Origin: Bugula neritina
Taxonomy: Eukaryota; Animalia; Bryozoa
Reading direction: 5' to 3'
DNA: 16,796 nt
NCBI GenBank assembly: GCA_964035545.1
Contig: CAXIUT010000186.1
Coordinates: 1 to 16,796, forward strand
Positions within the stretch are counted from its first letter, which is position 1; the number at the start of each line of letters is the position of its first letter. The notes under the pieces are model-generated. The model had not been told where the DNA came from. It saw only the letters and a list, made by a program, of their open reading frames with translations, and made no database searches. Of this stretch, positions 1 to 16,796 are shown piece by piece. Position numbers and translations under genes: made by a program.

Positions 1-1504
1 CTAACTCTTCTTGGTGCAATAACAAAAAATAACTCACCAAAAATATATAAATTCATAATAGAAAGAATTTAAGGAAAAACTCAGCTTTTATGACTTCTGT
101 TCCCATCTCACCAGCAAAAGAAAATAACTACCTAGCCTACAATCCCTAAGTCAATAGAAACCTGCCCATAACAGACTACTTCATCTATTCCTCTCATAAC
201 ACTTATCTCGAAGGAAACCAACTAACCAGCGACTCTAAAGTCTAAAGATACATCTAGGATCTTAATGACGGGATCAATGTGTTTAGATCGATGTGCATGA
301 TTCAGGAGATATTCCTATAGTAACCCATGCAGTCAAAGGAATGTATTTGAATAAAGCTATTGAGTTTTAAGATGTTATTAGATAAATAGCTGCCTTCTGC
401 AATACTCATAAACAGTTCGATCCCATCTTTTTATCAATAGAGAACCATACCTGTATCAGCAATAGGTATAAAAATGGTAAATATAATCCTAAAATACCTA
501 TAAAAATATTTATTTACATTAGAAGGATAGAATAGTTAAACTCTTAAATGCAAAACTCTAGGATAGCTCAGAAATAAAGTCATAATAAAGACAGATTCAA
601 GTATATATAGTATACTTAACTTAAAAAAGAAAAAACCAGAATTATCAAGACCACTAGTCAACTTAAATCCTCCCTCTCACAAAACAATTCGACAAATCTA
701 ACTTCCAAGTCAGGTATTAAAAATTTTAATAAATGACCAATAGATTAAATCAAAGAAAGTAATAATTTATAAACTAACTACCGGTTGGATACTTTCTTGG
801 AGTATAAGATCAAATGGCTAAAGTTACATCCTTATTCAAATTCTTCCAATGGAATCAAAAACAATAACTCGTTATTTTATTAAAGCACCAGTCTAACCAG
901 TAAGGCTGTATAAAAATTAAACAGAAATTAAAGTATAACATATACAAAAAGGTCATTTTTTAAGAGTATATCCTGTGGCAACATAAAGTCCACCAGTAAA
1001 AACTATGATCCCATTCCAGGTCTAATGGTAGGAGCACAACTAATTGCTCTTAATACTCAGACCAACGACGAGTATGCCTGGCTGATGATGTCTTATTTCA
1101 CTGCTGGAGGCAACAACTAAATCCAAAGAATGGGCTTTATCTAAAAGCCTTTATACCTTCGTTCTAGTGCCTAAAGAGACAACATCATGAAGAAGATATA
1201 AATAAGTGTACTATCTAATAACTATGATGTGAGTATTAGGTTTTACGGTAGTTAGTAGGACAAGAAGAGAAATAAAGATAGTGAGTATAGTTTTATGGTG
1301 AGAGATTATTGTTAGGCTTTTTTTATGTTTTAAATATAGTAAAATTTAAGAGATTGTATTCCTGTTAGATTCATGCGTCAAGGATATCGAGTTATTATTG
1401 GTAGAAATTCAAATTATAGTGATTGTGGAGCCAGAATATTACTCAAAATCAAAATGAAACTAATACCTGCAGCCATAGATCTAGATATCAAAAACAATCG
1501 TTGA
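1..1504 (+). CDS. PLC: Phosphoinositide-specific phospholipase C (X box, Y box, degenerate C2), 5'-truncated, with several 1-nt frameshifts
   Basis: With TAR=Glu it reads LPITDYFIYSSHNTYLEGNQLTSDSKVE...CVEIDVHD..PIVTH...PIFLSIENH (X box), LGELRNKVIIK, HFLRVYP...NYDPIPGLMVGAQLIALNTQT...GFIEKPLYLR (Y box) and CIPVRFMRQGYRVI (C2 end). Stop is TGA 1502-1504. Frameshifts near 277, 460 and 975. Confidence 0.92.
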
Positions 1505-1858: not shown

Positions 1859-2613
1859 TCATCTCCTTAAATCTTAGAAAAATAACCCAAAGGCTAGGGA
1901 ATATCCTTTGGCTACTACCTTATCAACTTCTACTACCTTATCGACTTCGACTACCTTGTCAACTTCTACTATCTTGTCAACTTCTTCTACTATTTTGCCA
2001 GTTTCTTCTTCTTGATTATTCTTACACTTTTATTTCCCTTTAAAACAAAAAAGGATCATTCAACTTTTAAGATTGCATTCGAGAAGGAATATTTCTTACT
2101 TATCTTTATGGTTATTTGACTCGATGTGATTTGTCATTCAAGGTATGCTTTCTGTAAGACCTTGTTTCATCTTTTATTGAACTTTTTATGGTTCGGAGAG
2201 TGTTTAAGATCCAAAAATGAAGCTCCTCTCGCCTGTGGAGTCTTTGATTTTAATTTTTTGTTATTTTTATGTGATTTTTGGACAGATTTAATGGAAGGCA
2301 AATGATGAGTGATAGGCAGATTATCTTTTTGAGTTAATCCAATAGGTACAGTATAACCTTATTCTGTTGTTCTACTTTTCTACACAAAACTATGAGACTT
2401 TCTTGAACTACTCACATCAATAGTTCTACTTTATCTTTACCGATAGCTTTAATGTCTAGAATGATCCTGTTTAGGTTATTCCATATTATACTTACTGAGT
2501 AGATCTTCCATGGTTTGTTCTTGTTGGTTGATCATTTTATAGATATCTTTGATTTGACCTGCTTATTTCTATAGGGCAGATAGTTGGTAGAACTTAGGAG
2601 CTTGACCTTTCAT
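1859..2613 (-). CDS. Hypothetical low-complexity protein with DK(I/V)VEV repeats; 3' end uncertain
   Basis: Minus-strand ATG at 2613 (MKGQAPKFYQLSALEKEAGQIKDIYKMINQQEQTMEDLLSKY...). About 3 frameshift corrections are needed to reach KIVEEVDKIVEVDKVVEVDKVVEVDKVV. The first TGA in that frame is 1859-1861, but the gene could extend to ~1640. Confidence 0.5.
1912..1983. repeat. 18-bp tandem repeat x4 (CTACTACCTTRTCRACTT), coding DK(V/I)VEV on the minus strand
   Basis: Four consecutive units at 1912, 1930, 1948 and 1966. Differences are mostly at synonymous positions. Confidence 0.9.
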
Positions 2614-2632
2614 TATAAGTTATGATTTATAA

Positions 2633-3217
2633 ATGAGAAAAATCAAAACTTGCATAGTAGGCAATTCTGGTATAGGAAAAACTAGTATCTTACAAAGAAT
2701 TCATGAAGGAGTCTTCAAATAAAATACTGCAGGAACAATAGGAGTCGACTACAAATGGTAAAAACGAAAAGTCTCAAACTAATAAGTGAGAATATAACTA
2801 TGTGATACAACTGGACAATAAAAATTTAGATCTGTGGCTAAAAATTTTTATAAAGGATCTGACGGAATGTTTCTAGCCTTTTCAATGAACGATTAAAAGT
2901 CAGTTTAAAGTTTATAGTTTTGGATAAAAGATCTAAGAGAACATCTAAACCCCTAAGTTCCAATTATTTTATTAGGAAACAAATCAGATCTCAACTCGAA
3001 TCTTTCTCCACCTTTATAAAAGATAATCAAAGAGATACAAGAGAGATAAAGTTTTAAATTTTACAAAGTAAGTGCTAAAAATGGTTCGAATATCAAATAA
3101 GCATACTAGACTTTGTTGGTTGAGGCATTAAAGTATAGAAAGAACCATGCATCTGTATAAAGTATGATACTTGAATAAAATAATAAAAAGAAAAAGAAAG
3201 AGAAAAAATGTTGCTGA
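2633..3217 (+). CDS. Rab-family small GTPase, divergent, 194 aa, intronless
   Basis: Uninterrupted frame with TAR=Glu: GNSGIGKTS (G1), TIGVDY (G2), ELCDTTGQEKFRSVAKNFYKG (G3/RabF), IILLGNKSDL (G4), VSAKNGSNIKEAY (G5), and C-terminal KKEKKCC prenylation motif followed by TGA. Confidence 0.95.
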
Positions 3218-5072: not shown

Positions 5073-6333
5073 ATGACAACCAGCTAGAAGGTCAAATTGA
5101 CTGACATCGTTACTTCAAAATAAGTTCACAATAAGAAACGTGGTCCTTTATTCACTCTCAGCAACTCATTCAAGCGAAACACTATCTTCACATAAACATC
5201 TCATCCTTCCAAACTATCATGTACTCCTCCAATTAAGTAGATTAAACCAGATTACCTGAGCTGAAGTTGTCTCGCAGGGACATATCGTATATGTTGAAAT
5301 ATTTACTGGGCAAAGAAAGTATCAATCAACCTGATAGAAATTTGATTCGACGTATTCTAGTGGGAAGTATCGATGAAGAGTTTATCCAGGCTGGCAGTCA
5401 AAATTTTGTCAATTATATCGAGTAAATGATAGATTATTCAGGATGATGGAAGGTAAAGAAGGTCACTATCTACATCCAGAAAAAAAAATGTTTTATATGG
5501 TCCTTAAAGGATCAATAGCCATCACTACTATGGATTATTAGTATTAGAAGAAGGAAGGAGATACTTTTGGATAGCTGTAATTTCTATCTGGAACATCAAT
5601 ATAGGAAATATACTTCCTTAAAAATAGCCTTCTGATCACTATGTAATAATAGCATTTCAAAACTTTCTTTCTCCCGAAAATACATAATACATATTGTGAA
5701 AGATAACAATAGTTATTGTCTTTACAATTGGTTCTTGATTCGATTCCTGTGTTTGGTAAATATTTGTTTTTATCTAAATATCAAAGCAAAGTCTACAGAA
5801 TGGGAGAGAAAGTAGTAGAAAGAGGAGAAGTAGTTCGATACGTGCATGTAATAGGATAAAAAATGAAAGGAGAAAAGGTCAGATGTGTGAAAGGATGTAT
5901 TGGTTTATAATAAATTCAAAAATAGATAAGATGTTATCAGGAAACAATCTATTCTCCATCAAATAATATAAAAATACCATTTTTTAATAAATAAGATGTC
6001 CAAAAATATATACTAGATAGTATAAATTCTTTAAGATCAACTTCTAAATTTAATAGTAAACTAAATAGATCATCAATACTAGGCCAATCTAGTCTACAAG
6101 AATCGATTGTTTTTGATAATCCTTAGATGAAAACAACTAGTTTTATGAAAACAAAACGTGTCAAATTAGGTTAAAAAAGATCAAATACTGAGAGTTCTTT
6201 TCCCATAGAAAGTTAATTCAAATTTTTAAAATCTACCAGATTTGGTAAAATATCAAAAAACATTGATTTATAGCCAAGAAAAAGAAACTATTCTATTTGT
6301 CAGAAAAAAAATAAATCCTTCTTTATTAAATGA
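5073..6333 (+). CDS. Cyclic nucleotide-binding (cNMP/CAP-ED) domain protein
   Basis: MFYMVLKGSIAI...KKEGDTFG[TAG=E]LEFL matches the CNB-domain pattern FYxILKGSV...GDxFGE. A second degenerate domain follows (VYRMGEKVVERGEVVRYVHVI). The frame is intact from ~5440 to TGA 6331-6333, with two frameshifts upstream. Confidence 0.75.
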
Positions 6334-6347
6334 ATCTTTATCTATGA

Positions 6348-6460
6348 TCATTTATACTATCAACATTGATATAGTCATTTATACTATCAACATTGATATA
6401 GTCATTTATACTATCAACATTGATATAGTCATTTATACTATCAACATTGATATAGTCATT
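6348..6460. repeat. 27-bp perfect tandem repeat x4.2 (TCATTTATACTATCAACATTGATATAG) between convergent genes
   Basis: Four identical units plus a partial one. Lies between the cNMP gene stop (6333) and the minus-strand gene stop (6506). Confidence 0.95.
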
Positions 6461-6505
6461 AATATAGTCATATAGTTTAAATATTATTAATAATTGATCA
6501 CTATA

Positions 6506-7990: not shown

Positions 7991-10900
7991 ATGAAGAACA
8001 AAATCACCATCTCAACTCTCCTCCTCTTCACCATCCTTTCGACTACCGCTAGCGCCCACTAGGCTGGAGACATATCTGGCCTAGTTACTGGTACAATCGA
8101 CCTCCAGCCCAACGAACTCATCAACATCAACACCTCAAAACAATACTCTCTTACTTTTCCATAAACAACAGGAAACGCAGCAGTCAGCTACGCACTAGGT
8201 ACTTGATCTCATATTTTAGCTTTGGCTGGATTCTAATGCAGAGCAAATCAATCATACTACACCGTATTACTGAAAAATATATCAATAACCAACAACATCG
8301 GACTATCATTTACTTTGTTTTTCGTATCAGAGGCAGGAGTAACTACCAGTTGGTTCAAATTGAAATGGACCTATCTAGTAGTCTCATCAACTCTTGACTA
8401 AACCTACTCGAACATATGGGCCAGCTATTTATAATTCAATACCACAGGCCAAACCATTCAAAATATACCCATCGGAAATCTACCAGAATTTATAGCCAAT
8501 GGAGGAGCACCAGCAGATTGCAACATCTATATCGATCCCTTGATGCAAGTCGACCTTTCAGGATGCGCAGCAGCACCAGCAACTACCAAACACTAAGGTG
8601 GAAAACCTATCATCCACGCATACATATCCGGATACTCTTTATCATACTGCCCTCAAAAACCAAATCCAGTCTCAGTCAAAAAAGGAAACCCCTCTTTTCC
8701 TTACTCAGATTCCCAAGGATGGACATTTGCTTATGGCTCTAACGTTCTTAATGGTCCTAAAATAACCATTCCCACCTCACAACTCCTTCACATACAAATA
8801 TCATTCCTTGTAGTTAGAATGGACTTCTATGCTGATAACTACCCTCTCAACTCCCAACTACTCTACAGTTCAAGCCACGTCTTCACAGATGTCGACCAGT
8901 ATAACACTATTATACCATTGAGTCAAACTGCCACCTACAACAGCAACTATTTCTAACTGCCTGATGTAAAATATATAATATACGGATTGTCTGGCTTCAG
9001 TTTCAGCAAAGCCATCACCTCTGTTTTCTCTTTCGATTTGCAACTAAATAAAAATAACTTTATGGCAATGAATCCCTACAATTCAATAGAACAAGTGTTA
9101 GTGTCAGGTGATATGTTCATCAAAAATATATAACAAATTTGTAATGCTAAAAATAACTAAATTTCTCATACTGGAGTCATTCAAGCTACAGATTCCAGGC
9201 CTGTTGGTCTTCCTCTGTCTAGTGGAATATCAACAAGCATAGCCTCTTCAGATTATACAGACAGTCCCAATCCTTTAGTATCTTGGAATCTAGCTTAAGG
9301 AACCAATCAAAACGAATAAATAGCATTTACTCACACCCTTTGGTACTCAAATATCACCCAACAATCAACAGTTAGACTATAAATCAAATACTTTTAGCAA
9401 CCCAATGTCCCTTCGACTTTAGTCAACAACTCTCAGTACCACCTAGTCGTCAAGTTGAACTCAATTGTAGTCTTTGATTAAGTCTACACTCATATAGTCC
9501 AAACACAGCCTTATGTCTCTCCCACCTTCTTCAGAGCACTTCCTCTACCAGCAGGCAGAATATAAGTATAAACCATTCTAACCTTCAATTCTAATATTCT
9601 GGACCAAAAAATTTACATCTTAACTGCAGTATATTCATATTCTTCTGTCTATAATATAAATACGAAACACTGTGCTCCTCTCTGCCCATCATCTTCTGGC
9701 ATCAACGCCAATCTCCTCCCAATAACCTGCTTTACCTGTTAAAAGCCTAATATGGTCTATAGTATCATCAACGCCAGCTGCATTTGCCGACCAGGAACTT
9801 ACTTTAACACTGCTGATAATATCTGTCAACCTTGTGGTCTGAACTGTCTCAACTGCGATCCTCTAGAACCAACTATTTGCTACTCTTGTAACCCACCAAC
9901 ATAATTAAATAATAATTCTCAATGTTCATGCCTGAATAACCAATATCTGGCCACTTCTTTCTGCGTCAATTGTCCATCTTAATGTAAAACATGTTCAGCC
10001 AGTGGCTGTCTAACCTGCAATACCAAACCCTGTCAATGTGCTAGCAGTTATTTTGATCAATCAATCAATGATTGCGCAATCTGCGATTCCCATTGTCTAA
10101 CATGCAATCAAAATAACTCCTGTCTATCTTGTATTCCCAATCAAAACAGACTATTCACTAACAACCAATGCAAGTGTATCAATGGATCATACTAAACTCC
10201 CTCAGGTCTCTGTCATTCTTGCTCTTAGCTATGTCTAACATGCTAGACCTCAGCTACCAGTTGCACTTCATGCAATGCCAACGCCAATCGAATTCTCAAC
10301 GGATTTGTTTGCGTCTGCGCACCAGGATATATCTAATAAGGTCTAATATGTGTTCAGAAATCATGCCAATATGATCCTATCTGTGCATAATGTTCCCATA
10401 TCGTCAATAACACATATCTATGCCTTTCCTGCGTGCAAAGATTGAATAGATATCTCAATACAACACTCAACAAATGCATCTGCAATAATCAATACTACTA
10501 ATCTGGCGGTATCTGCCTTCCTTGTGCTTCTGGATGCCAAATCTGTCTCAATTCTACGATATGTATAGTATGTGCTTCGTTGTCTGTCTCTTAGGAAAAC
10601 GGGTCGTGCATCTGTCCTAATACTACCTTTCTTGATAGTACGCCATAAGGATTGTTGTATTGCAATCATTGTCCACCATTGTGTCAGAGTTGTCTGAATC
10701 AAAGTGTCTGTTTGACGTGTATCGAAAATGCATAATCATCTGGAGATAATTGCAGCTGCTAGGATGGTTATTTTTATAATAGTAAATGTAAAAAATGTCA
10801 AAAATGCTCAGATAATTGCCTGATTTGCAATTAAAATTCATGCCTAAAGTGTAAACCTCCACTATTTATTTTATCAGGTAAATGCTACCTCTATCCACCT

Positions 10901-12811
10901 CAACCACCTCAACCACCTCCTCTTCCATGTCAAGTACCTCAACAACCATGCCATCTACCGAACCAACCTTGCTATCAACCTCCTCAACCTCCTCAACCTC
11001 CTCAACCTCCTCAACCTCCTCAACCACCACTTCCACCTTATCCTTGCAAGAATGGCTTCAGCTATATTAATGGAACATGTGTCCCTTGTATAACTAACTG
11101 TTCAATCTGCCTTGACACTACAACTTGTAGCTAGTGCTTCTCAGGATTAATTTTATAAAACAACACTTGTATCATAAAGTGTGGAATTAGAACCTATCCA
11201 GTAACTCTACCCAATTTAACAATCATATGCAGTCCTTGCTATTTCCCCTGCCAATCCTGCATCAACGATCCATACTACTGCCTCACCTGCTAGCACAACT
11301 ACTCCCTCTACACCAACTCCAACACCACTCAAATCTGTCTACTATCCTGTCCAGATGCAACCATCAAACTCAATGGAACATGCCACCCATGCCTTCAAAA
11401 CTGTCTTAAATGCTAATCAACATAAATCTGCCTCACCTGCAACTCTTCTATGTATCTCTATCAAGGTAACTGCATAGATAACTGTTCTGGTGCTATCAAA
11501 AATACTACTTCTGGAATGTTGTGCTACGACTAGTGCCCTGAAGGCGATTTTGTCAATAATAACGGTGTTTGCTAGAGTTGCGACTGTCAATGCAGTTCTT
11601 GCAATAGAATATCAAGCAATTGCACCAGTTGCAAAGTGGGCATTCTAGTTGACTATGGTGTCTGCATCGATGCATGTGCTATAAATCAGTATATAGTAGG
11701 AGGCATATGCCACAATTGTTCACATCCTTGTTTGAAATGTTTTAAAAAGAATGACTACTGCCTGGCTTGTCCTCCCGGTTTGGTCGCGTAAAAAGGAGAA
11801 TGCATAAAACACTGTCCAATGGCTTCATATTTTAGCAAATCATAGATGTAGTGCTTGAACTGTAAGAGAGGCTGTGCTTCTTGTTTGTCTTTAAGAAAAT
11901 GCCTGACCTGTCAAAATAGCACATATACTCCTCACTATGGAGTATGTCCGATTTGTTAACTAGACTGCGAAATATGCAGCCACGATAACCGCTGCCTCAA
12001 ATGCACCTCTCCCCTACTCCTGTTCAACGGCGCATGCATCAACACCTGTCCTAGCCACACATAGCCAAACAACGGAACCTGTCTCTGCCTAATGAACCTG
12101 CTACAACATGATCGATGCCGACCTGCTTGCTATCCCACCTACTACAACCACAGCGGAATATGTCTCTTATGCGATCCTCAATGCAGAACTTGTCAAAACT
12201 AGCCTTCCAACTGCACAGGTTGCTACTACGGATATCGCTTAGTTGGCAACAAATGCATAAATAAAAATAAATGCGCGTATGGGCAGTATTCTAGGAGAGG
12301 CAGATGCCGATCGATTTGCCGAAAGGGTACCTATTTTTATGAATATATGTGTCTATACGGCAGATGTCCTCCAGGATATAAAGCCAATCGCTTTAGAGGA
12401 TGTTAGAAGGTATGGTTCTATACTTGTCCCTCCAATAAGTTATACTATAAAGGCAAATGTCTCTCTAAATGTCCCTCAGGTCTATTTGCTAACTACAAAG
12501 TCCAAAGATGTCGATCCTGTCCACCCAATTGCAAAACATGTATCAATGCTAAATAGTGCTATCTTTGCAAAAAGAATTATGTTAATATTGATGGCAAATG
12601 CTATTTGAAGAGATGCTAAGCTTAGTATTTAGCATTAGGTAACAAATGCGTTAAAAGTTGTCCTGTTGGTACAAAATAGAAAAAAGGAGTTTGTTTATAA
12701 TTATGTAAACAGAATAAATATTACTTCAACTAACTTTGCTACTAGAAATGTCCATCAGGAAAACATACAACCTATGCCTGTCTTTAAACAAATAAATGCC
12801 AACAACCATGA
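7991..12811 (+). CDS. ~1600-aa secreted protein: signal peptide, H-type-lectin-like/beta-rich N-terminus, long furin-like CxxC repeat array with a (PPQ)n insert, no C-terminal anchor
   Basis: One frame from ATG 7991 (MKNKITISTLLLFTILSTTASA) to TGA 12809-12811 once a 21-nt intron (8199-8219) is removed. Dozens of CxxC...CxxC repeats from ~9670. Ends ...NKCQQP with no hydrophobic tail. Confidence 0.88.
8199..8219 (+). other. 21-nt (3n) spliceosomal intron containing an in-frame TGA
   Basis: gtacttgatctcatattttag; TGA at 8204-8206 is the only in-frame stop I found in the 4.8-kb frame. Confidence 0.85.
10895..11044 (+). repeat. Pro/Gln-rich coding repeat; (CAACCTCCT)x5 at 10976-11020 encodes (QPP)n
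   Basis: In the gene frame: PPQPPQPPPLPCQVPQQPCHLPNQPCYQPPQPPQPPQPPQPPQPPLPPYP. Confidence 0.9.
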
Positions 12812-12872: not shown

Positions 12873-12946
12873 GGGGTTGGGGTTGGGGTTGGGGTTGGGG
12901 TTGGGGTTGGGGTTGGGGGTTGGGGTTGGGGTTGGGGTTGGGGTTG
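12873..12946 (+). repeat. Internal telomeric tract (GGGGTT)~12
   Basis: Tetrahymena-type G4T2 repeat (one unit has G5), G-rich on the + strand, 61 nt after the stop of the Cys-rich gene. Confidence 0.97.
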
Positions 12947-14316
12947 AGAGTTATAAAATTTATCAACTATCTCGACCAAAACATATTCTCTTACATATTT
13001 TTATGTGGTCCAAAAAAAATATATCTGACTCCATCCTTTGAACGTGCCTTTAAATCAATGAACAAAGTTAGAAAGGGAGACTACTATTTGGCCTGTTTAA
13101 AAATAGTAGACAAAATAAATAAAAATAATTAGTAGTCATTAAAAAACCATCTAAAATATCAGCATATTATAAAATATAAAAATAGTGGAAAAGTACCATA
13201 TTAAGTTTTAGTTACAAACAAGCACTAATTGATATTGAGGATATCAATACAAAAATAAAGCTATAAAACTATATATTCAGAAAATCTAGATCCAATAAAG
13301 TCAACGCTGTTGTCCTAGAATCAACTAGAGCCGATTGCCAACCGACCACCTTACGACTAACATAAAATCAGTAATAAGGAACTATAAGGCGTTATCAGGT
13401 AGTTGGCTTTTGGTGGTTATTGATAAAACTACAAAAGTTAAAAGGAATATCGAATAACCCTTTGTAAAGGTATTGTTTATCAATGTAATTAAATGGTCCA
13501 ATCAAAAGAACATCAATCATCAAATTTTAAGAAGCAATCGCTCCTTAAATATAGACACTATTCATTCAAAAATAAAAGGATTAATATCATTAACTAGTAA
13601 AATAGGAAATAGTTGATAACATCGATAATTTGGATTAATATCATTAAAAATAAAAAGGATGTTACATTCACAACTATTAGCATAAAATAAAAAGGATAAT
13701 AAACTACAATAAAGAATAAATAAACACAAAAGAACTAATATAGACTTTGGACAATCAAACCAGTAACACAAAACTATGGAAAAAATCATTAATATCAATA
13801 TCTATGATAGGTTGTCTCTCAAAATAACAACTCAAATTTTATCATTAAATCAATAACTACAGCAACACATAGAAATAGATTACGTGTATTTTAGACATAA
13901 ATTTATAAGAAACAATAGTACATACTTTATAGACAAATCAGTTAAAATATAATAGTTCGACAGTCCTGATTGCTTCAATAACCGAGGCAGAATCGAATAC
14001 TGCTTATGGAAAGTCAATAAATATAAAATATGGTAGAGTTGACAGTATAAATATCTATCTAGCACTTGAAGGCCATGATGTCTATGAGATTATGAGAGAG
14101 CAGATGGGGGTAGCTGTAAAATATTATAAAGGTTAAAGGTGTTGTAAAGAATAGGAGATAAATAATAAGAATATATCGTTTTGTTCTGTTAGTGATTAGA
14201 AAAGCATTAGCAACAAGCCTAGTCAGTAATATTATTCAATCGTAAATAGCTAGTCAGATATGTTCTAGTAATTTATGACCATCAGCAACACATAATACAA
14301 CTTTAGCTAAAACTGA
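12947..14316 (+). CDS. Hypothetical protein, apparently 5'-truncated at the telomeric tract
   Basis: A TGA-free frame begins right at the telomere junction (RVIKFINYLDQNIFSY...). After about 2 frameshifts a long frame runs from ~13610 to TGA 14314-14316. No recognisable domain. Confidence 0.5.
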
Positions 14317-14334
14317 TATCATAACTTAATATAT

Positions 14335-14374
14335 GCAATTAATATATCATAAAGGCAATTAATATATCATAAAG
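14335..14374. repeat. 20-bp perfect tandem duplication (GCAATTAATATATCATAAAG x2) just upstream of the LRR start codon
   Basis: 14335-14354 and 14355-14374 are identical. Confidence 0.9.
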
Positions 14375-14378
14375 ATAG

Positions 14379-15536
14379 ATGTAGTAGTAGCCGAATTGGT
14401 AGAAAATACGTATGCAAGCATTTGGCAGTAAACACAGACAATAGATTTCAAATCCACTCAAAAACAAACTACACAGCTATCGATTCAGTTATTTATTTAT
14501 TCAATCAGGCAACAAAAACATAAAAACATAAATTGTCAACCACTACTCACAGAAAATCAATAAAGTATAAAACTAGTGCAACTACTAACATCTCACCTAC
14601 CTATGGCTCAGTAACAATAAAGTAAATAAAGATGACAACATGATTGGAAATGAAGGATGCCAATACCTATCAATAGTATAGTGGAAAAATCCACTTTGCT
14701 GGGTCTAAGTAAATAGTATAATAAACAATATACATAGTATAATAACCAATAAGATAACAATTGTATTGGAGATTAGGGATGTGAGTATTTGGCTAAAATT
14801 GATTGGAAACATCTATAAAAATTATTTTTAGGTATTATTACAGATATTATAGCTAAAAATAATATAAGATGGAAAGGATGCAGCGCATCAGCCAAATAGA
14901 AATGGTTAACTTGAAAGCTTTGTTTTTATGTATTTATAGTTATCAAAAAGGGAAAAAATAAAATAGCAATCTTGGATGTCTATCACTAGTTGACAACCAA
15001 TGGAACAATTTATAAAGATTGCATTAGGTATTTTTTATTATATTAATAGGCGATAATCTAATAGGACATTAAGGATGCAAATGGATCTCACAAATCTAAT
15101 GCAAACAACTCGTCTACCTGAACCTACGTATTATTATGAGGTATAATAGAATAGAATAAATTTGGAGAAAAGGATGTAAGCATCTAGTTAAAAGTCAATG
15201 GACTACATTAAAATAACTAATTCTAAGTATATTTATATCTATATTAGAAGATACCGGTATTAGAGACAAAGGATGTAAGTATTTAAAGAATATCAATAGA
15301 AACATATAAAAACATTATAACTGCGTAACTAACTATATAAAATAGAATAGAATCAAAATAAAAGAAAAAGGATGTGAGTATTTATCAAAATGGAACTATA
15401 GTTATAATTTTTAATTAAATATGTGTATAAATGTATTTATCTAGTTGACAACTACCTCAATAAGATTGGCTATCAATGGATCAAATAAAGTGCTGGTGAG
15501 GTTATCTGCAAATTGAAATTTCAATCCTAATCATGA
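14379..15536 (+). CDS. Leucine-rich repeat protein (26-aa RI-like repeats), ~10 tiny introns, one repeat per exon; many 1-nt indels (sequencing error or pseudogene)
   Basis: Repeats follow xxNxIGxEGCxYLxxxxWxxLxxLxL, e.g. NNCIGDEGCEYLAKIDWKHLEKLFL and DNLIGHEGCKWISQIECKQLVYLNL. GT-AG introns at 14488-14508, 14611-14631, 14709-14753, 14832-14852, 14930-14950, 15028-15049, 15128-15149, 15227-15247, 15325-15345 and 15425-15444. Stop is TGA 15534-15536. Confidence 0.85.
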
Positions 15537-15645
15537 TTGTAAACTTTTGTTTGTTTGATTTATATTAATTATTATTGATGAATAAATGATATAAATATAT
15601 ATATTTGTAGTTTATCATTGATATATATCAATATCATTTAAATTA

Positions 15646-16020
15646 ATGAATCCACTATATAACCTAACAACACCTCAATCTAAAACAAAAACAATAATAA
15701 GAGAAATAGTAAAAAGTGGTTGTCCTAAAGTTGAAATAAAAACCAAAGCCTCGAGTCAGTTGGTCCTCATAAACAGTTGATAACTAGGGCATGAATAAAA
15801 AAAAATCAAATCGTAAATATATACCTTATCTTAGTCTGCTGCATCTATCATCGTCCAGGATGACTAAAGTAGTGATACATGTACAGTGACGATGAAGGAG
15901 AAACGCTTTATAGAGAGACAGAACTACAAAAAATAACATAAAAAAGTTTGTTCTAAGTATAAAAAAAAAAGATAAGAAGAAAAAATAATCAAAGAAGAGT
16001 CGTAAAAAAAATAAAAATGA
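15646..16020 (+). CDS. Small Lys-rich hypothetical protein (possible 22-nt intron 15813-15834)
   Basis: ATG 15646 follows an AT-rich spacer, there is a GT..AG 22-mer, and the 3' frame ends KEESEKKEK-TGA. Needs frameshift correction. Confidence 0.35.
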
Positions 16021-16085
16021 TTATTATGTTAAATAATGATATATTTGATATGTTGATTATAGTATTTTTAAATATTTTCTATAGA

Positions 16086-16647
16086 ATGCTAAACAATCAA
16101 GAAAATCATCTCACTTCCAGACATTCTCCCCATCCTATGAAAACATCTCCAACAGAATGACCCGTCTGCGCCACAACTCCCAAAACCACAACCAGCACTC
16201 CTCTCCACCGAGACCTCTCAACACCCAAACCACTCCAACCGCAGCACTCAGTATCAAGATACAAGACAAGAGTCAGTCCATCATGCATCAACTTAACAGA
16301 TCATATCCTAACCTAAGGGAAATTTACAGGAAGAGTAACAAAAAATGTAGGTTTAAAGAAATACAACCAAAGACAAATCAAGTAGGTAATGAATCATAAA
16401 TAAAACAACAAGGGAAGAAATGATTAAAGCTACTATGTTAAATAAAATCTAAGGTATCAACGTAAGGTAGCATGGTCAAGGAGTTCAATCAAAGAGTAAA
16501 AATCGATGAGGTAAAGATAAATGGTACTATAAAGATAGATCCAATAAAAATATAAGCAAAAGGTAGGATGGTAATCATTGGGATAGTGTACTGGTACCAG
16601 GTAAAATGTACAAAAGATAGTATTTGATTGAAGTTATGAAAAATTGA
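16086..16647 (+). CDS. Hypothetical subtelomeric protein
   Basis: Higher-GC segment between AT-rich spacers, including supplied ORF 16157-16399. Needs 2 frameshift corrections and has one unexplained TGA (~16507) before TGA 16645-16647. Confidence 0.4.
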
Positions 16648-16730
16648 TCTTTCCTTTGATATATCACTATACATATAATCATAAATAACTAAAAACAATC
16701 AAAAAACAATGAACTATTCATTCCGCATCC

Positions 16731-16796
16731 GGGTTGGGTTGGGGTTGGGTTGGGGTTGGGGTTGGGGTTGGGGTTGGGGTTGGGGTTGGGGTTGGG
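16731..16796 (+). repeat. Terminal telomere (GGGGTT)n with a few GGGTT units
   Basis: G4T2 repeats run to the end of the window, consistent with a macronuclear chromosome end. Confidence 0.97.

Follow-up and report, generated by a model that had tools for sequence, protein, structure and literature searches.

Near one end of the window analysed here (the whole 16,796-nt stretch of DNA), leucine-rich repeat (LRR) motifs recur at almost fixed intervals and are separated by short GT..AG spacers. The question raised by this locus is whether it is a modular gene in which each repeat occupies its own exon, the decayed remnant of such a gene, or a repeat whose spacers are not introns at all. The window is AT-rich and of ciliate macronuclear type. 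A Gly-Cys anchor, GGATG, is found at window positions 14655, 14777, 14876, 14974, 15073, 15172, 15271 and 15370, i.e., with spacings of 122, 99, 98, 99, 99, 99 and 99 nt, and nine GT..AG spacers between 14611 and 15444, every one of which starts with GTA and ends with AG, delimit eight exons (Table 1). The sizes of the eight exons, as given in an earlier sequence-only reading of this DNA, were reproduced exactly. Two of the eight exons measure exactly 78 nt and the remaining six are one base off; the two clean ones (exons 2 and 5) have phase 1 at both ends and each translates as one full repeat, again in agreement with that reading. Its estimate of about 21 nt for the introns holds for eight of the spacers (20-22 nt) and fails for the second (45 nt), which contains a direct repeat (14710-14730 and 14731-14751, 90% identity) whose inner splice sites are absent. 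The window structure is not due to chance, since no match to a two-anchor pattern is expected (0.00, from 200 shuffles of the window) and independent contigs carry exons of exactly 78 nt. A length census of GTA..TAG segments over the whole window gave no clear intron peak, as would follow from there being few introns outside the LRR gene.

Table 1 Features of the LRR locus and the terminal telomere, in window coordinates (in translations here and in the text, e = TAA or TAG)
Feature	Position	Strand	Remarks
Possible upstream exon or decayed repeat	14533..14610	+	ends HLTYLWL plus 1 base; coding status uncertain
GT..AG spacer 1, 21 nt	14611..14631	+	5' leader, or a phase-1 intron should the upstream exon be genuine
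Exon 1, 77 nt	14632..14708	+	candidate start ATG 14640 (MIGNEGC...)
Intron 2, 45 nt	14709..14753	+	two tandem 21-nt copies; chain model
Exon 2, 78 nt, clean repeat	14754..14831	+	NNCIGDeGCEYLAKIDWKHLeKLFL
Intron 3, 21 nt	14832..14852	+	GTATTATTACAGATATTATAG
Exon 3, 77 nt	14853..14929	+	one-base frame break after Trp codon
Intron 4, 21 nt	14930..14950	+	GT..AG
Exon 4, 77 nt, degenerate repeat	14951..15027	+	KKeNSNLGCLSLVDNQWNNLeRLH(e); break in last codons
Intron 5, 22 nt	15028..15049	+	GT..AG
Exon 5, 78 nt, clean repeat	15050..15127	+	DNLIGHeGCKWISQIeCKQLVYLNL
Intron 6, 22 nt	15128..15149	+	GT..AG
Exon 6, 77 nt	15150..15226	+	break in A-run GAAAAGG, 15166-15172
Intron 7, 21 nt	15227..15247	+	GT..AG
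Exon 7, 77 nt	15248..15324	+	break near 15290-15297
Intron 8, 21 nt	15325..15345	+	GT..AG
Exon 8, 79 nt, last full repeat, degenerate	15346..15424	+	one surplus base in A-rich 5' part
Intron 9, 20 nt	15425..15444	+	GTATAAATGTATTTATCTAG
Last exon, C-terminal cap	15445..15536	+	DNYLNKIGYQWIKeSAGEVICKLKFQSeS*; TGA stop 15534-15536
Terminal telomere, G4T2 with some G3T2 units	16731..16796	+	

The nature of the spacers is best judged in relatives of the window gene. A metagenome collection was searched with the two-anchor pattern, which returned 11 loci, and three contigs, independent of one another, were found to carry the same design in a total of six arrays: L006 (of which L002 is a sister copy), L007 and L011. 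The chains in these relatives comprise 5-12 GT..AG introns and the exons between them are exactly 78 nt long; the introns measure 19-23 nt, nearly all of them 20 nt, with one terminal intron of 26 nt, and all array introns are in phase 1. They open with GTA, close with TAG in most cases and have a GC content of 32%, against 43% in the exons. Over all relatives' arrays, the spliced phase-1 frame contains no TGA in about 1090 codons, whereas the two other spliced frames contain 15 and 26, and the unspliced frames 0-5 each. Because a 20-nt spacer has a length of 3n + 2, the frame in the relatives is kept only when the spacers are removed, and this conservation of frame argues strongly, if indirectly, that the spacers are likely to be introns. 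The sequence-only reading had described one 26-residue LRR repeat per 78-nt exon with symmetric, phase-1, tiny introns, a description that the window and the relatives' arrays together bear out, with the difference that the spacers are mostly 21-22 nt long in the window and 20 nt in the relatives.

The family is multi-copy, being present as six arrays on three contigs and also as partial paralogues, since other contigs in the same organism's runs share a 33-nt stretch of the exon encoding GCEYLS. Four arrays of 78-nt exons, on both strands, lie within 13.6 kb of L007 (L007:1-13654), indicating that these LRR genes are clustered. Among the other loci returned by the search, the pattern hits in L001, L005, L008 and L010 were due to short repeats of other kinds. 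L003, L004 and L009, considered as arrays of 69/75-nt exons, were rejected as a near-identical 93-nt satellite that has no LRR reading; chance GT..AG pairs in this satellite mimic exon/intron chains, which calls for caution in pattern searches of this kind.

An alternative that dispenses with splicing starts from the equivalence of 99 nt and 33 codons: the region could be a 33-residue repeat read through from about 14974, or a non-coding tandem repeat. The five anchors from 14974 to 15370 do lie in one frame at an exact 99-nt spacing, and this frame is free of TGA from 14803 to 15513. However, this AT-rich window abounds in long TGA-free runs, including where it is non-coding (424 codons at 13042-14313), and the earlier anchors sit in other frames. 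A 33-residue unit would also separate LxL from the conserved Asn by seven residues; moreover, every spacer has the form GTA...AG, and the relatives' 20-nt spacers must go if the frame is to be kept. We regard this alternative as very unlikely.

We favour instead, with moderate confidence in the whole, the following explanation. The region would be one of a multi-copy family of small genes that encode LRRs only, in a ciliate with the peritrich code; one 78-nt exon would encode one 26-residue repeat, and GT..AG introns of about 20-22 nt would be inserted in phase 1, with the codon after LxxLxL split behind its first base. Once the introns are removed, the product would be an uninterrupted LRR solenoid, preceded by a short N-terminal exon and closed by a C-terminal cap. 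The exons of 77 and 79 nt would owe their lengths to single-base errors of a poorly polished assembly tail, and the true gene, probably intact, would be spliced and expressed as a modular LRR protein.

The translations above depend on a code in which UAA and UAG specify Glu and TGA is the sole stop. In the window, the Glu of the IGxEGC motif is encoded by TAA or TAG at 14774-14776 and 15070-15072. The conserved Glu at repeat position 8 of the relatives is represented by 8 UAR, 15 GAR and 3 CAR codons, and the Gln-rich position 17 by 13 CAR and 2 UAR codons, so that UAR goes with GAR and not with the Gln position. Independent support is provided by an intronless gene for a Rab-type GTPase at 2606-3214 (+), recognisable by the motifs GNSGIGKTS ... 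DTTGQeKF ... GNKSDL and a CC end, which uses UAR at the Glu of DTxGQE. Furthermore, an ORF of 1534 codons at 8207-12808 (+) contains 51 TAA/TAG codons and is closed only by TGA. The assignment to a ciliate with UAR=Glu, already made from the sequence alone, is therefore upheld by both the LRR repeats and the Rab gene, whose conserved Glu residues carry UAR. We take this to be the peritrich nuclear genetic code. The first report of UAA=Glu is credited to Sanchez-Silva et al. 2003, as cited in PMC4967479.

Several further segments of the window were noted in passing. The product of the 8207-12808 ORF is rich in CxxC/furin-like Cys repeats, has a Pro/Gln-rich segment (PPQPPQ) near 10900-11030 and resembles ciliate proteins of the surface-antigen type. 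By eye, a phospholipase-C Y-domain-like segment, GAQLIALNTQTNDE, was recognised at 737-1501 (+), where the frames switch and tiny introns are therefore likely, as was a cyclic-nucleotide-binding-like segment, GDTFGeLeFL, at 5377-6330 (+). A 27-nt tandem repeat (4.3 copies, 98% identity) occupies 6348-6464.

At the protein level, the 26-residue family consensus is xNxIGxEGCKYLSxAxWxNLxxLxL, and it satisfies the LxxLxLxxNxLGxxG consensus of ribonuclease inhibitor (RI)-like LRRs. G9 is present in 36/36 repeats, N3 and I5 in 31/36 each, G6 in 26/36 and L21, L24 and L26 in at least 29/36; a near-invariant Cys at position 10, directly after EG, and a near-invariant Trp at position 18 are features of this family. 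Variability is greatest at positions 1, 2, 19, 22, 23 and 25. Of 20 single-exon peptides of the relatives, 11 matched Pfam LRR_6 (best E 0.008) and 2 matched LRR_RI_capping, all scores falling below the gathering threshold because the queries were single repeats only. The window pieces gave one weak LRR_6 match and one blank, the unspliced upstream piece reaching E 0.01 and 16.3 bits against a cut-off of 23.4 bits. A 25-column repeat profile compared with solved structures pointed to the GALA-LRR protein 4xa9, through the NxIGDEG motif. The weak Pfam match suggests that the repeat belongs to the RI-like/LRR_6 class. The relatives are short, LRR-only genes, with a short first exon, 5-12 cassette exons and a last exon that carries a partial repeat followed by TGA, and the 3' end of the window copy has this same form; read in the other frame, the last exon of the window copy meets a stop at 15514-15516. 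By eye, the N termini of the relatives do not look hydrophobic, and no other domain, NACHT and F-box included, was seen in their flanks. Such an architecture is likely to provide a soluble scaffold for protein binding. The recognition role put forward in the sequence-only reading gains no support from these short, LRR-only proteins.

The 5' end of the window gene allows two readings. Its start may be the ATG at 14640, or its first exon may be a decayed upstream repeat that ends in HLTYLWL at 14610. The upstream piece reads in frame as VNHYSQKINKVeNeCNYeHLTYLWL and retains four residues typical of the family (N3, L21, L24 and L26), and excision of the 14611..14631 spacer joins LTYLWL-N-DNMIGNEGC in frame; upstream of 14533..14610, no AG acceptor was found before the piece and no in-frame ATG nearby. 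The reading from ATG 14640 (MIGNEGC...) resembles the start of the relative L007-, MIGDGECKGL, and the spacer at 14611-14631 may accordingly lie upstream of the true start codon. The start of L006 is MVELLRNIKEIEAKEEKSVIPLRVSL. A start at ATG 14603 combined with the intron at 14611 was rejected as out of frame, while the frame from 14481 (…HLTYLWL) or ATG 14640 fits. A perfect 20-nt direct duplication is located 5' of the LRR gene, at 14335-14374.

One irregularity of the window copy is that six of its eight exons would break the frame. Each odd-length exon shows the family character at both ends, its 5' half being read in the phase that enters the exon and its 3' half in the phase that leaves it; a one-base break separates the two. 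Exon 1 reads DNMIGNEGCQYLSIVeWKN when anchored at its 5' end and ...STLLGL when anchored at its 3' end; exon 3 reads KNNIRWKGCSASAKeKW and then NLKALFL, with an in-frame TGA arising only via the shift. In exon 6, the 5' reading eNKFGEK is followed by GCKHLVKSQWTTLKeLIL, and sister repeats have GAAAAAGG at the site of the break. Exon 7 gives DTGIRDKGCKYLKNIN followed by eKHIKTLeL, and exon 8, anchored at its 3' end, gives NRIKIKEKGCEYLSKWNYSYNFeLNM.

Comparison with short reads bears directly on the origin of these breaks. Short-read contigs of the same organism (X1, X2) cover 13246-16700; they run unspliced across the gene and are thus DNA. Relative to the window they show 77 substitutions, transitions for the most part, and 40 gaps that amount to a net 12 extra bases. 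For the tail as a whole (12947-16796), the short-read contigs indicate about 1.2% single-base gaps and 2.2% substitutions, and among the indels listed the differences are of one base in short C/G runs. Six breaks in 624 exon nucleotides is the number predicted by a gap rate of 1.2%. An X3 contig of 151 nt, which aligns to 15104-15253 with no mismatches and one extra base, spans the 77-nt exon 6. The 4.6-kb ORF to the left of 12808 shows no frame break and the same is true of long ORFs in the left 12.8 kb, whereas the stretch to the right of an internal telomere array at 12873-12946 is indel-rich, and upstream of about 12950 X1 and X2 contain different DNA. On balance, the tail at 12947-16796 appears to be poorly polished and possibly chimerically joined, and the odd exon lengths are probably errors, which would leave the true window gene probably intact and mis-assembled at single bases. 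The short-read contigs derive from a strain that is about 2% diverged, so some of the indels may be real, and each single frame break is no more than a candidate error.

The arrangement of telomeric repeats in the window touches on the same boundary. The terminal array (16731-16796) begins about 1.2 kb past the stop codon of the LRR gene, at the distance that the sequence-only reading had given. The internal G4T2 array, of 12 units, lies 65 nt past the TGA of the 8207-12808 ORF, and the 3.85-kb stretch that contains the LRR gene directly abuts it; at the join near 12950, a true chromosome end seems to have been linked to another fragment by chimerism or mis-assembly. The quality of individual bases varies along the window. 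On the way from the LRR gene to the telomere, the region 16100-16400 is C-rich and coding-like, with an 80-codon standard ORF at 16157-16399; several C insertions of reads relative to the window make the window frame unreliable there.

The main rival to assembly error is true decay, in which the window copy, as a subtelomeric member of the 78-nt-exon LRR family, would be degenerating as a pseudogene. Its lesions would then comprise the six frame-breaking lengths, the 45-nt intron, the doubtful start and the degenerate repeats of exons 4 and 8. That six of eight exons measure 77 or 79 nt, with one shift creating an in-frame TGA, is what such decay would produce, as is an upstream repeat that lacks an acceptor site or nearby start codon, and a subtelomeric position would be in keeping with the concentration of young LRR arrays of Tetrahymena in fast-evolving subtelomeric regions (PMC6564038). 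The search of sequencing runs likewise gave no transcript: the runs searched for the gene yielded only unspliced, DNA-like contigs, no RNA run contained the gene, and a run guessed to be RNA (X7) gave nothing. Yet each broken exon still carries the family motif on either side of its break, there are as many breaks as the overall gap rate of the stretch against the short-read contigs would predict, X3 adds one base, without a mismatch, exactly across a 77-nt exon, and substitutions are few in the LRR block (at least 4 at 14622-15444, among those listed). We therefore consider a pseudogene unlikely, though it is by some way the most serious competitor, and retain the explanation of an intact gene with assembly errors.

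How the arrays grow can be seen most clearly in L006, in which neighbouring units have identical introns and exons that are up to 85% identical, with array-wide identities of 77% for introns and 69% for exons, indicating recent tandem duplication of a 98-nt exon-plus-intron unit. In the other arrays, including that of the window, exon identity is about 52%, equal to the level between arrays, and these arrays are old. In a nearest-neighbour test of the exons for exchange between genes, only the young L006 clusters by gene; outside L006, 5 of 33 nearest neighbours came from the same array, a number that was reached in 1236 of 2000 shuffles, the exons being too diverged for the test to speak for or against such exchange. 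The symmetry of the exons also invites the proposal that regulated skipping or inclusion of 78-nt exons generates many LRR isoforms from each gene. Internal exons are indeed symmetric (phase 1-1) and a multiple of three, so that any subset could be skipped in frame, which establishes a possibility only. However, exon symmetry follows automatically from tandem duplication of the exon-plus-intron unit, the sequencing runs searched contain no RNA support for skipping, and the analogous genes of Tetrahymena are explained by duplication and recombination rather than by a choice of splicing. We regard regulated skipping as highly improbable.

With regard to known proteins, the RI-like LRRs (LRR_6), which include ribonuclease inhibitor, NLR and GALA-LRR proteins, share the N-x-I/L-G-D-E-G motif after LxxLxL with the window family. 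The family repeat is distinguished from them by a length of 26 rather than 28/29 residues and by the near-invariant Cys after EG and Trp 18. A length of 26 residues is that of the cysteine-containing (CC) LRR class. The LRR exons of vertebrate RNH1 and NLR genes are likewise modular and of symmetric phase.

The nearest known counterpart is found in Tetrahymena, which possesses thousands of LRR genes built from exons of exactly 90 bp (Xiong et al. 2019, PLoS Biol, PMC6564038). These are subtelomeric and pericentromeric and diversified by exon duplication and recombination, and their authors proposed that the design had arisen once, in Tetrahymena (PMC6564038). The reference to 90-nt LRR exons in Tetrahymena that accompanied the sequence-only reading is accurate according to this source. 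Both families consist of oligohymenophorean ciliate LRR genes with tandem exon-plus-intron units, a fixed exon length, a uniform intron phase, multiple copies and unit duplication (seen here in L006), and the subtelomeric position of the window gene matches one of the two positional preferences of the Tetrahymena arrays. In contrast, the Tetrahymena exons are of 90 nt (30 residues) with introns in phase 2, and those of the window family of 78 nt (26 residues) in phase 1, such that an exon corresponds to one repeat plus a split codon; the window family also has micro-introns of about 20 nt and the UAR=Glu code. No chains with 90-nt exons were found, the length being 78 nt. The window family is an analogue of the 90-bp family and not a member of it. 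What had been suggested to be an undescribed system is accordingly better seen as another version of the modular LRR gene known from Tetrahymena. The gene family, with its modular build and its micro-introns, is genuine, and it brings no new mechanism to light. Full-text literature searches brought up no account of LRR exons of 78 nt, nor of LRR exon arrays in peritrichs.

A more ambitious proposal is that peritrichs possess an independent, large and fast-turnover LRR family of exact 78-nt (possibly 81-nt) phase-1 cassettes with introns of about 20 nt, in which in-frame skipping or exchange between paralogues would create a variable binding repertoire, and which would constitute a second, convergent origin of the design. 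We consider this improbable. A second version with another exon length, phase, intron size and genetic code nevertheless suggests that the design is recurrent, or older, within the oligohymenophoreans. Exact 78-nt exons combined with 20-nt introns also offer a usable signature for gene finders, as such genes would otherwise be missed in UAR=Glu genomes.

Finally, the family may have a bearing on peritrich introns in general. In three peritrichs, intron lengths are narrowly distributed, with later introns moving towards phase 1, contrary to the trend in Tetrahymena; this shift was left unexplained (Zhou et al. 2026, Mol Biol Evol, PMC13685798). That study makes no mention of LRR genes or 78-nt exons, yet the phase-1 bias is common to the peritrichs and to the window family. 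Abundant phase-1 LRR arrays would be expected to produce such a bias, and arrays like those described here could account for the phase preference of later peritrich introns.
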